The notes beneath the pieces were generated by a model. That model ran no database searches. It worked only from the letters and a program-made list of their open reading frames with translations, and had not been told where the DNA came from. The position numbers were made by a program, and so were the translations under genes. A DNA stretch of 63,601 bases, the filler included, from Ministeria vibrans ATCC 50519 (taxonomy: Eukaryota > Protista > Filasterea): NCBI GenBank assembly GCA_943704425.1. It is 5 parts of 5 records of this genome, joined end to end, with 100 filler letters (N's around TTAATTAATTAA, not from the genome) between each part and the next. Parts side by side here need not be neighbours in the genome. Positions count along the whole stretch, not along the records: positions 1 to 20,181 come from CALSCP010000783.1; 4 more parts are not named here. One strand, given 5' to 3'. Positions 11,761 through 19,451 of the stretch are shown piece after piece (the stretch's first letter is position 1; each line of letters starts with the position of its first letter).

Positions 11761-14700
11761 TTACGCCTGAGAAGTTATACCGACTACAAAGTCTTGCTTT
11801 TGAGGCTGAACAACCATTTGATACACATCGTGGAGGTGATGAATGACAGGGCAAATGGGCGTATTGGCCGTGCTGCCGGGGGGTAGTAGGTAGATGTGAG
11901 AGAGATCCCGCTTGGGTTTCGTCAATACTTCCTCACGCATCTGCGAAATCTCCGCAGCAGTTTTGGTGTGTTGGATTCCAAACTGGCGATCAATGTCTGC
12001 CTGAGGAATCTTCTTCCCAATTTGTGCCTTGCGCTGAAGCACTTCGGGCCAAGGAGACCAGCGCATCTTCATGACGAATGCATTGGCCAAGTAGGGAGTG
12101 GATGTACGGCCCGTCTCACACACACGGTCAGCGTGTAAATTCAGGTCCTCGAGGGTGCCGTGACGACCCGCGGTGTACTTGACACTTCTCAGGTGAAATG
12201 TGCGAATCAACATTATTGTGCGCTGATCACCAACGTACGAGTACACCGAGCGTTGCACATGTACATCCCGTTGCCAGTCCATTGCCACAGTCTCATCGCC
12301 AACAATGTCCACTTGAATTAAGCGGTACATCTTGTGAGACGGATCCGCCGACTCTAGCGCCGAGCGCAAATGATCGACAATCAGCAACTCTGTGCCCACC
12401 GTCAGAGCCATCTTCCATGCATCCGGAAACTTGGCTTCCTCGTCCATCACCTCCTTGTCCACCTCCAGCGCCGCAAACATTGGATTTCGGGAGTTTCTCA
12501 CCTCCCACGACGCAGGCGCATCACGCGCAAGTATCGCGCGTGTCGCGTCCGTACTATTGTAGTCAAAGATCACTGCGCGATCAAACAATGGTGAATGCAC
12601 TCGAATCCAGTTTGAAATAAGAAGTGCTTCGTTGAAAAAATGGCCAATAAGGACAATCTAAAAGGAAAGGAATAATAATAATAATAAATAGAGATAATAA
12701 TAATAATAGTAATAATAAAACATTGTTACCTGTCTCCGAGTCTCCTCCTTCTTGATTTGATCGGCCACGGACAGCAGCGGCGGCGGTGAGTATGGGTTGT
12801 GGGCAATTTCGCGAAATACTTGCTTTGCCTTGTCCGCTTGATAGAGAGTCGCGCGTGGCCAGGGAACAAGAAGAAGCACGGGGTGCTGAGGTTGGCCTGG
12901 TAGAGCCGTCAAGACATTTTGGCGCACACGGTCCATATCCCGCCATTGAAGAACCACGACCACTACAGGTGCAGCCAAACGCGACAACTTGGAGGCAAGA
13001 GTGAGCGTTGTCACAGTAGCACTATTAGAAATGGGATTTGTGTCGTCGCCGCTACTTTCCTGGAACAGGCGCGTAAGATGCACGTCGGTGGTGCGACCAT
13101 CTTCATGAGTCTGGAGAGCACGCGCCACGGCGAGGTCGTTGTCGCTCGTGCCCACCGCGACCAATTCATACTGTTGGCGCTGCAAATTGCCCAGCTGTTG
13201 CAGCATCCAATGGCGCGTTGCGTTCGCTCGACCCGCGTACGCCCGGTAGAACCAGTCTTGATCAAGTCCCATCGCCACTTCCGTGACAATTTCAGTCTCC
13301 ACCACGTTTGCCTCCTTCCCGCTTCGCTCTGGCGTGGCAATGGCCAGCGTCACAAAGATGTAACTCTCGTCCAGTCCAATTGACACTGACGGACGCTCCA
13401 TTGCAATAATACTCAAACCCGCCTCATGTGCCAGTGAGCGCAGTGAGTGCACGGAGAAGAGCGACGTACGGTGCTCATGCACGAGATCAAACTGCAATTA
13501 GTAAAAGAACTATGGGTTATGATTATTTCTGTCATTGTTTTGCTACTCTTCACCTGCCCCTGATCAAACATAGTCGCCGATGTGGTGACCAACAGATGAA
13601 GAAGCGACGTGGAACTCATGAGGACGGTGCGAACCTCATTCAGGAATTCAACTGGCGTTCGTGTGCGTGACACCGTGTCCCACATGACAATGGATGAAGC
13701 GTCACGGGCCGCTTTTGGTGTTTGTGACACGTCTGACCAGTCAGCCTTTTGCACCACAAGACCTTTGCCTTTGGCAAGCAAAACAGCAGCGTCGTCCGCT
13801 TCTGTGCCAGATGCTGCTATGCCCTTGGCGTTGAGCAGACGCAACAATTCGCCCTCATGACACTCAAACTCGAACACCGCACGTGCCTGTACGTCGCTGT
13901 GACTTCCTTCGACAGCGGTCGCCACCTTGTCCGCCACCCATGACAGCACGCTGGGTTGTGTCGTGGCGCGCGCGCGTGCAGGTGGCAATCCACCAGAGTT
14001 TAACGACACGTCAATTTCTACATGATGACAGCCGCGACAGCGAACGAGGGTTTGTCGAGCGCTCCGCGTCGGCAACTCCATAATGCGCAGTGTGTTGGAC
14101 GTTTCCTTTTCGCCACACACTCGGCAGAGAGGCTGGTCACTGGCGGGCGCGCGGTTGTAGTCGTCACGTCCCAGCACGAGCGTGCGCATGTGCAGCACCA
14201 AGTCGTGGCTCACGCGCGCCGCTGTGCCCTGAAACGAGCCAAAGGACGGATAGTCTTGCAGAAATTTGTTGGTGCTCATCTGCACACCTGGTCTGTCGGG
14301 TCCAGGTGAATGAGATAGACGCTCGATGTAAGCACCCGTACGCGCGCCAACTTCATTGGCAGTGCGCGCCACAGTCGCATGGTACGATGCCAAATGATAC
14401 AGTTCGTACCGAGACGAGCTGGTGGGCGCTGCTGAGCCCATAACAATAGCCTCGAGTGCACGCACAGCATCGTCGAGCCAGAGGACGGGGCGCAAAGTTT
14501 CCGTGTGCGAGACGAATATTCGGTCGTTGAGCAACGCACTCACAGTGAGCTCCATCTCCAATGTGTCCACACGTTGACTGCGTGACACTCCTGCAATTTC
14601 GCCAAAACGAATGCCAACAAGCCGGGGGGTGGTCGAGGGTGAAGCCTCTACAAGGCTCTTGAGCGCGCGCTCACGGTGAAGAAATGACAGCGCCCGTTGA

Positions 14701-15409
14701 TCAGCGAGCGCCTCATCACCGATTTCGGAGTCCTCGCCGTGTGCCATGTCTGTACCGGCCGCCGGGAGAACGGTGTATGACGAGGCAAACACGAGAGTCT
14801 GCTGCGAGTCCATCCGTGTGGCGAGGACAACGACGTCATCTTCATTGTGCTCGGCTGACGGTGCCCTCGCGTTCCGCGGTGTGTTGGTCGGTGGATCTCC
14901 AAGGTACACGACAACGTCAAAGGCGGCCATGTCTTCCTTTGAAATGTCTTTTGCCGCTTGGACGTGCACGTGAGAATGGTTTGCTGCTGGGGGTAGTTGG
15001 CGGTGGACTCGATCAAAGCCAATGATCGCAAGGGGAGACGAATCAGACGATGACAAACGCGCCATCAATGTGTCATGAAACCGAGCCCCAACAAACCCAT
15101 TCACCCCGATTATCGCAACAAGACGTTTGTTTTTAGGATTAGGGTCTGTGAGTTTTGTCAAACTTGCGTTTTCGTGAAACGACGACGACGGCGATAAGGG
15201 GCGTTTCGAACTCGTTGGTGCAGGGCTCAAGGGTTTAGTTGTGAGACTAAATCCATGCTGTTGTACTGGGTAGCGGTGGAACGCAGGGACGCCGATGAGG
15301 AGAGCGAGCGTCGTCAAAGAGAAAATCAGTAAGGTCCTTCGCAAATCTACTGTAAAATACGAGAAGTGACGGATAAGTGGCCTTCGTATTTCACGCCGCG
15401 CATACTCAT
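11761..15409 (-). CDS. Type II membrane fusion protein, paralog A: degenerate NAD-dependent epimerase + degenerate NDP-sugar C-methyltransferase + apparently intact GT2-like glycosyltransferase. Exons 15409-15406, 15349-13554, 13491-12730, 12657-11761
   Basis: ATG A|gtatgc..tacag|TA GAT gives MIDLRRTLLIFSLTTLALLIGV (TM); GVNGFVG, RFGEIAGVS, CRVC..CRGC, HEH; GT motifs FFNEALL..WIRVH..LFD...DYNSTD, VDKEVMDEE, WKMALT..TELL, YTAGRH. Confidence 0.8.
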
Positions 15410-18600: not shown

Positions 18601-19451
18601 AATAATCATACTATTGTTGCGTTTGCAATATTAGCTCTCTATTCTCGATTAATTTTATTTTCTTAATATTATTGGTGCCGTGTTGGTGCCTGCACTTGTG
18701 GCTTCATTCGTCTGGTCGTTTGTTGAACTCCCCCTTCCCTTTCAGTGCTCAGTTTGTGTTGGTGTTTTCTTGACCTTCTCTTCTCGTTTTCTTTTGCCTA
18801 TCTTGCTCGGGATAGGTTGCGCTGGTGACATCGTTCCGCAACGCGGCGACACTGCTGCCACGATGGATTCGACACCACGCTCCCTTGTTTGACCGGGTTG
18901 TGTTGGTGGACATGGGGAGCACAGATGGGTCACGCGAGGTCTTGCGACGCGAGGCACCGAGCACATGGGAGGTGCGGGAGAGCGGGGAGACGGTGCAGCG
19001 CATTCTGGCTGAGTTGCCCCATGACATGTGGAAGGTGACGCTGACCGCATGCACCGACTACTTGGTATTTCCTCAGATGCATGAGACACTCGGGGCGCAC
19101 AAGGCAACTCGTAACCAGGTTGGCGTTCGCGTGCTCACAATGAACGGAGCAAACTTGTCGCTGCTGAAGCAGTACGAGAGTCTTCTTCTCCAACGCTCTC
19201 AGTACCGCATAAGCGAGAGGAAACCGCTGGTGATTTACCGTCGCGATTCAGGACAGTCCGCTGAGAGCAGCGACGTGTTTTTCGAGACGAAAGGGTTTGT
19301 GGGGAGCTTCACTGAGCGACAGGCAGGGGGCATCACGTACGACTTAGCATCGGTGTACATCAAACCTGAACGCGCCAAGTCGCCATTTCACGGCTATCAT
19401 GCTGTCTGGCAGAGTGTGTTTCAGGGAGTTTCTTTGTTCAAAGACGAATGA
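15608..19451 (+). CDS. Type II membrane fusion protein, paralog B: NAD-dependent epimerase/reductase + intact Zn-binding NDP-hexose C-methyltransferase + degenerate GT2-like domain. Exons 15608-15634, 15755-17641, 17751-18470, 18816-19451
   Basis: MNITKKFAL|LRRPIGVALVLLGLVAFSLYFF (TM); GSSGFIG, FASTSA, Y-A-A-S, RFGTVVGVSP; CVVC, QPLANDF, CRKC, YLYRSGTS, EIACNDG, NVLAH, FDTVYHEH, IHGNS, YGAAAKG, AWNF (TcaB9/TylC3-class C-methyltransferase signature); WIRHHAPLFD..DMGSTDGS. Confidence 0.88.

Follow-up and report, generated by a model that had tools for sequence, protein, structure and literature searches.

Can a multidomain enzyme be divided between two gene copies so that each keeps what the other has lost, and what then becomes of the lost parts? 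The question is raised by a head-to-head pair of intron-interrupted genes, A (minus strand, 15633..11761) and B (plus strand, 15608..19451), in a stretch of 63,601 nucleotides, filler included (the window), from the filasterean Ministeria vibrans ATCC 50519. The window joins five parts of five records of the eukaryotic assembly GCA_943704425.1 (29.7 Mb in 2860 contigs), and both genes lie in the part taken from CALSCP010000783.1 (positions 1 to 20,181). Subfunctionalisation by domain is the best reading. We consider it somewhat probable that A and B are divergently transcribed in-paralogs with complementary domain degeneration, B modifying a nucleotide sugar and the GT-A glycosyltransferase-like domain of A probably transferring it; the complementary degeneration itself is well supported.

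All comparisons of the pair were made exon by exon rather than on joined spliced proteins. To judge by their sequences, A and B are paralogs, with a similarity far beyond chance: BLASTP identities by exon are 33% (E 3e-81), 32% (E 6e-35) and 29% (E 8e-16). A first-pass annotation of this DNA had taken them for duplicates with one architecture, and both the BLASTP values and the Pfam domains agree with it. In each predicted protein (about 1152 amino acids for A, 1089 for B) a signal anchor is followed by an atypical short-chain dehydrogenase/reductase (SDR), a sugar 3-C-methyltransferase (MT) of the TcaB9/KijD1 type and a GT-A glycosyltransferase-like tail. Pfam assigns B the families Epimerase (4e-12), Methyltransf_13 (1.3e-16), Methyltransf_23 (4e-9), Methyltransf_14 (7.3e-27) and Glyco_tranf_2_4 (8e-7), while the Pfam matches of A are weak and mostly under the curated cut-offs. 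Every motif quoted in that annotation is present where it was placed, and the two intron positions it gave as identical, GQ/FD and Q/xxL (the slash marking the intron), are indeed common to A and B, both in phase 0 and both supported by spliced RNA contigs.

Four public sequencing runs were aligned over positions 12560-18559: two with transcript-like contigs (X1 and X5), a poly-A metatranscriptome of marine origin (X6) and one of unspliced DNA (X7). The RNA evidence, being in the form of contigs, bears on presence and splicing only, and levels of A and B expression are not comparable in it. Spliced RNA contigs of A and of B come from two studies, and X6 holds contigs of both as well as the last splice junction of B. 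The contigs also reveal three additional 5' introns, two in A and one in B, which give both genes proper ATG starts: that of A lies at 15409-15407, with codon 2 split by an intron, and that of B at 15608, inside a first exon of nine codons. The TTG codons considered as starts of the long A and B open reading frames (ORFs) were rejected for this reason. With the starts corrected, each N-terminus consists of a basic stretch and then a hydrophobic signal anchor. A single RNA contig is continuous from spliced A to spliced B by way of 15566-15633, so the first exons overlap in antisense; this indicates that the two transcripts overlap head to head and share one promoter region. There are no stops or frameshifts in either coding sequence, as had been noted at first reading, and the introns of A, counted as five in all with four located by coordinates, are correctly spliced.

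Of central importance is how far each domain has decayed. A search with the main exon of B gave about 70 proteins, 45 of them full-length (1000-1130 amino acids) with the same architecture, from bdelloid rotifers, one chlorarachniophyte, one dinoflagellate and many metagenome contigs. Columns at least 90% conserved in these 45 are here called near-invariant, and a third M. vibrans paralog, C, was scored together with the pair. The SDR has 64 such columns, of which A keeps 41, B 62 and C 57. For the Zn-ribbon and N-terminal half of the MT the figures are 18, 54 and 53 of 58, and for the C-terminal MT domain 18, 54 and 54 of 54. Alignment to family hidden Markov models and this column scoring thus bear out a decayed MT in A and a kept one in B (36 and 108 of the 112 MT columns, respectively). 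Averaged over the 45 homologs, identity in the two MT halves amounts to 22-24% for A against 52-58% for B; between the homologs themselves, the least similar pair reaches 37-48%. The end branch of A measures 2.19 in the SDR tree (median 0.33) and 10, the cap, in the tree of the C-terminal MT domain (median 0.27).

The individual motifs follow the same pattern. A GxxGxxG Rossmann motif is present in both SDRs (GSSGFIG in B, GVNGFVG in A), but A has lost the Tyr (DQRALS), which is at least 90% conserved in the family consensus Y-x-x-S-[M/L]-x-x-R-E, and its Epimerase match (2.5e-3) falls under the cut-off. Both genes retain the Cys pairs of the Zn-ribbon (CVVCGS...RCRKCQH in B, CRVCGE...RCRGCHH in A), while 14 residues between the pairs, QPLANDF included, are deleted in A, which has no Methyltransf_13 match. 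The EIACNDG, NVLAH and YHEH motifs of B and C align to those of solved enzymes (for the main exon of B, over the sub-range 16970-17641), whereas the A equivalents are broken: S-adenosylmethionine (SAM) motif I reads FECHEG, NVLAH has become DTVSR, and the Tyr before HEH is missing. In its C-terminal MT domain A has VGTSDND for YGAxAKG and QWRD for AWN, and scores 21.4 bits against Methyltransf_14 (cut-off 23.5).

The tail shows losses on the other side. It has 18 near-invariant columns, of which A keeps 14, B 13 and C 15. Eight near-invariant polar residues (D26, D67, E74, E90, R98, Q135, R152 and H155 in A numbering) are all found in A and C, while five are missing from B, three by deletion of the column (D67, R152 and H155) and two by replacement (E74 by L, R98 by H). 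The E90 position of B is D, and its tail is about 80 residues shorter than that of A. Glyco_tranf_2_4 (gathering cut-off 27.5 bits) scores B at 29.9, over the N-terminal half only, and A at 22.4; at E values up to 0.01 it is matched by 36 of the 42 aligned family sequences, among them the tails of A, B and C. The AlphaFold2 model of the A tail has a predicted local distance difference test (pLDDT) score of 89.2 and the GT-A fold according to both Foldseek and VIA-align; its best match is GalS1 of family GT92 (Foldseek E 2e-7, Z 13.2, 203 residues aligned), and its top 50 structural matches are all GT-A enzymes. The B tail is modelled as a compact, shortened core with a pLDDT of 90.1, a figure driven by the alignment.

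The lost residues are thus conserved rather than variable in the 45 homologs, neither gene has been interrupted and both are transcribed and spliced, which together argue for subfunctionalisation by domain. Several observations weigh against so simple a picture. The reciprocal decay proposed at first reading stands as far as the losses are complementary, but it is lopsided: the MT of A lies far outside the family range, while the retained part of the B tail lies within it, with 29.1% identity to the family over retained residues against 30.1% for A, and the family as a whole varies in the C-terminal half of the tail. The Tyr of DGYAAS, from which an active SDR had been read in B, is present, but its YxxxK partner, the Lys at +4, is absent from B and from all 45 homologs. 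The transferase domain described as complete in A does have the fold and all eight polar residues, but no member has a DXD motif. At that position every member reads L-[T/N]-x-[T/P]-E-F, with no Asp family-wide save that of B; the only near-invariant residue of the region is the Glu that is E90 in A. The SDR and GT-A domains may therefore work unconventionally or non-catalytically, and the names reductase and transferase are guesses from homology for the whole family. Twelve of the 42 aligned sequences match RmlD_sub_bind, so the SDR resembles 4-ketoreductases. A search for an ortholog of A gave only P0002 (30% identity), and a metagenome scan gave none. Lastly, the division of labour gains from the fact that the split recurs elsewhere, but C, with its conserved MT and tail, is a second candidate transferase; A need not be the only one, nor A and B an exclusive pair.

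The recurrence is seen with the A tail as query. A phmmer search against 1.84 billion representatives gave 692 matches, 412 of them at E 1e-10 or better. That the best of these were all standalone proteins holds only in part, as several are pieces of fused genes and C itself appears among them as P0070. True standalone tails are P0075, P0081, P0082, P0104, P0120 and P0125, some with a signal anchor of their own. The pattern of A, with SDR and MT columns largely lost and tail columns kept, is found in P0089, P0139/P0140, P0165 and P0084/P0118, and partly in P0122; in the tail tree such MT-dead, GT-kept proteins occur at five separate points, and at two of these they fall within strongly supported clades that also hold MT-intact proteins. 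A single old clade of A-type proteins was rejected, since the MT-dead proteins are scattered in the tree and the dead exons of A share about 31% identity with intact homologs against about 23% with P0089 or P0139. The converse is found in a clade of bdelloid rotifers (P0018, P0032, P0036, P0038 and P0039), in which the MT is kept and the GRH and PWPE..RK motifs of the tail are lost; Adineta steineri has the tail-degenerate P0039 plus an intact P0010. On this distribution, division by domain among paralogs is a recurrent habit of the family that has arisen independently. Giant viruses, phages and bacteria commonly carry SDR-MT fusions of about 700-850 amino acids (ESM Atlas clusters); judged by their shorter length and by the Pfam families listed for them, these seem to have no GT-A tail. 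Two of the contigs have features of their own: P0120, a standalone tail of 257 amino acids, lies on a phage-like JGI contig (L013) amid small ORFs, a thymidylate kinase, a sigma factor and ParB, and P0089, on an NCBI GCA_054601695.1 contig (L016), is a eukaryotic gene spanning 43 kb with very long introns.

Under subfunctionalisation by domain, A and B belong to an uncharacterised family of type-II membrane-anchored proteins with three domains: an atypical extended SDR, a 3-C-methyltransferase and a GT-A-like tail. After duplication B kept the catalytic and binding residues of SDR and MT with only a trimmed GT-A core, and A the complete tail behind a pseudo-SDR and a pseudo-MT. By homology B would modify a nucleotide sugar through keto-sugar chemistry and C-methylation, and the GT-A domain of A would probably transfer the product; C may act likewise if intact. 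The dead domains of A, open and recognisably folded, would most likely serve as a stalk or scaffold that links the membrane anchor to the tail. The data establish paralogy, the gene models, expression and the residues kept or lost in each copy, whereas substrates, activities and any contact between A and B are all inferred from homology.

The alternative that survives best, though we think it unlikely, is that the two proteins have independent functions, B alone modifying a nucleotide sugar and A being a GT-A enzyme that uses an unrelated donor, its dead SDR-MT portion a mere open-frame spacer. That the tail occurs by itself in many proteins, some of them anchored, is consistent with this, as is the fate of the near-invariant MT columns of A: 31-33% of them are kept, no better than the average A column in the comparison with B (about 32%), so that constraint specific to catalysis has gone and constraint on fold or frame remains. 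A spacer, however, would not by itself hold the similarity of the dead exons to B, which still align at E 3e-81 and 6e-35 although synonymous divergence (dS) is saturated even in the younger B-C pair; this argues for constraint on the fold rather than neutral decay. The recurrence of complementary decay further suggests that the parts stay functionally linked.

A closer link than subfunctionalisation by domain requires, an obligate heterodimer in which pseudoenzyme A docks on enzyme B and a C-methyl-branched nucleotide sugar is channelled from the B synthase to the A transferase, is doubtful, and we rate it slightly lower. The complementary losses would fit it, as would the shared promoter region with the detection of both transcripts in the same RNA data, and the dead domains of A are still foldable and alignable, as expected if they dock on the live ones of B. 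But searches of PDB sequences with the B exons returned only 3-C-methyltransferases, for the MT part, with no clear match for the SDR, and so give no template for a dimer interface. C would be an alternative partner, and standalone GT-like proteins and tail-less SDR-MT fusions exist, for which diffusion of the product would suffice; taken together, C, the standalone tails and the tail-less fusions show that physical coupling of the parts is not required.

A further reading makes C the working all-in-one enzyme and A and B partly redundant leftovers. C was found by an exon-wise search of the genome on contig C905 (minus strand, about 45782-47757; L012 2783-4754) and is completed by the small contig C70 (L002). 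Its identity is 69-83% to B in SDR and MT and 36-40% to A in the tail, and it has the GQ/FD intron but none ahead of the tail. The tail tree places A, B and C in one cluster (SH-aLRT 86), within which A pairs with C (83), and they are in-paralogs by this grouping. The high retention of MT columns in C (53 of 58 and 54 of 54) and of tail columns (15 of 18) speaks for a working enzyme, as does a B-C ratio of nonsynonymous to synonymous divergence (dN/dS) of 0.10-0.21 (dS above 1.2, saturated): for most of its history C has evolved under purifying selection, its lesions being either of recent date or artefacts. Against it, the SDR of C as assembled is cut by a frameshifting deletion of 256 nt, and both ends of C70 match C905 at one point, so that there is a path through C905 without 1.56 kb of the 5' part of C; either a heterozygous deletion or an assembly bubble could account for this. 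B moreover equals C in the conservation of SDR and MT, and A does so for the tail. We regard this reading as improbable.

Does A then decay neutrally? We think not. Between X5 and the window, B differs by two synonymous codons and A by 12 nonsynonymous and 8 synonymous ones, of which 14940-15269 (residues 27-136, the stem and first SDR strands) holds 12 nonsynonymous and 7 synonymous with 15 nt of indels; the rest of A covered by X5 shows one synonymous difference (14628) and none over 12730-14362, and all strain indels in A are in frame. That A is a transcribed pseudogene, a duplicate still expressed but without function and decaying, is very improbable: two of three domains are extremely diverged, no ortholog was found and the N-terminal region is hypervariable between strains, but about 1152 codons are open across correctly spliced introns, the strain indels respect the frame, the 12730-14362 segment does not differ and the tail keeps every near-invariant polar residue, with a pLDDT of 89.

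The nearest relative of B and C, P0004, is an intronless gene of 1064 amino acids on a gene-dense, ORFan-rich Logan contig (L014), with a GT17 gene adjacent and a histone gene nearby. The contig looks like that of a giant virus, which hints at exchange of the family between virus and host. It is tempting to go further and to see here a eukaryotic secretory-pathway family that makes and attaches a C-methyl-branched sugar, split in M. vibrans into an obligate synthase B and a transferase A docked by its dead domains, traded with giant viruses and taken up by bdelloid rotifers; we think this full scheme rather unlikely. The family places chemistry of the TcaB9 type behind a eukaryotic signal anchor and fuses it to a GT-A domain, in protists, rotifers and virus-like contigs. 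To our knowledge, C-branched sugars of this type have been described only from bacterial natural products. Our literature search found nothing on the SDR-MT-GT-A family and no eukaryotic or viral study of such C-branched-sugar enzymes. A and B, C and the independently arisen look-alikes form a natural series of domain knock-outs that shows which domains can separate, and hence a clean system for asking whether dead catalytic domains persist as scaffolds; the product of B and the acceptor of A, if identified, would define a new eukaryotic glycan feature.

Table. Exons, introns and domains of the A/B gene pair, in window coordinates (MT, methyltransferase; UTR, untranslated region).
Feature	Coordinates	Strand	Remarks
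A last exon, complete GT-A glycosyltransferase-like domain	11761..12657	-	298 aa + stop
A intron, 72 nt, GT..AG, phase 0	12658..12729	-	X1 pieces stop at 12657, restart at 12730; position corresponds to B 18471-18815
A exon, degenerate C-terminal MT domain (Methyltransf_14 remnant)	12730..13491	-	
A intron, 62 nt, at GQ/FD	13492..13553	-	joint in X1, X5; position corresponds to B 17642-17750
A main exon: signal anchor, variable stem, pseudo-SDR, Zn-ribbon, N-terminal half of degenerate MT	13554..15349	-	
A 5' intron, 56 nt, GT..AG	15350..15405	-	joint in X1, X5; splice ends checked
A start-codon exon, 47 nt	15406..15452	-	sole ATG in the two upstream exon pieces, in frame with main exon
A 5'-UTR intron, 113 nt, GT..AG	15453..15565	-	joint in X1, X5; ends checked
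Overlapping first exons: A 5'-UTR exon (-) antisense to B first exon (+, ends 15634)	15566..15634		
B first intron, 120 nt, GT..AG	15635..15754	+	joint in X1, X5
B main exon: signal anchor, stem, conserved SDR, Zn-ribbon, N-terminal half of MT	15755..17641	+	
B intron, 109 nt, at GQ/FD	17642..17750	+	joint in X1, X5
B exon, conserved C-terminal MT domain (YHEH, YGAAAKG, AWNF)	17751..18470	+	
B intron, 345 nt, at Q/xxL	18471..18815	+	loose end at 18472 continues into last exon (X1, X5, X6)
B last exon, trimmed GT-A core	18816..19451	+	211 aa

Beside the pair, 155 bp downstream of the A stop and on the same strand, lies a GH59 (galactocerebrosidase-like) gene at 8554-11605, with one apparent intron (about 10957-11209) and about 30% identity to animal galactocerebrosidases. 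Protein kinase ORFs (PK_Tyr_Ser-Thr) at 2321-4760, on the minus strand, probably belong to one intron-split kinase gene. A light-harvesting-complex gene (PF00504) was not found anywhere in the genome, so the protist may be heterotrophic; it occurs in a marine poly-A metatranscriptome.

Among known systems the closest to the MT are the solved sugar 3-C-methyltransferases TcaB9, KijD1 and MtmC (TylC3-type). All three are matched by the main exon of B (E 4e-19 to 4e-15), TcaB9 by its C-terminal MT exon (E 8e-19) and MtmC by the full-length family member P0009 (E 4e-44). Like them, B and C have an MT of three parts, a Zn-ribbon, a SAM domain and a C-terminal nucleotide-sugar domain, and they have in common the motifs QPLA/SxxF, Y.Y.S..S, EI.CNDG, N.L.H, Y.EH, YGA.AK and AWN, which are destroyed in A. 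The bacterial enzymes, however, are soluble, single-function proteins of antibiotic gene clusters, whereas the MT of A and B is part of a fusion, with a eukaryotic signal anchor and an SDR ahead of it and a GT-A domain after it. The order of SDR and Methyltransf_13/23/14 is shared with the fusions of giant viruses, phages and bacteria; those probably have no GT-A tail, while A and B have spliceosomal introns and are expressed by the host. The tail of A has the fold of GT-A enzymes of the GT2/GT92 kind (GalS1, SunS/ThuS and SpsA, Z 13.2 to 10.3) and a similar N-terminal pattern, F.NE ... W..HH..FD ... D.(N/G)STD, but the family has T/N-x-T/P-E in place of their DXD. In evolutionary terms the pair resembles cases of duplication-degeneration-complementation and of pseudoenzyme paralogs, in that the two copies have lost different modules and the dead ones stay in frame. 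It departs from the usual form in being split by whole catalytic domains of a fusion protein, in the head-to-head arrangement of genes whose first exons overlap, and in its recurrence in several lineages of the family.

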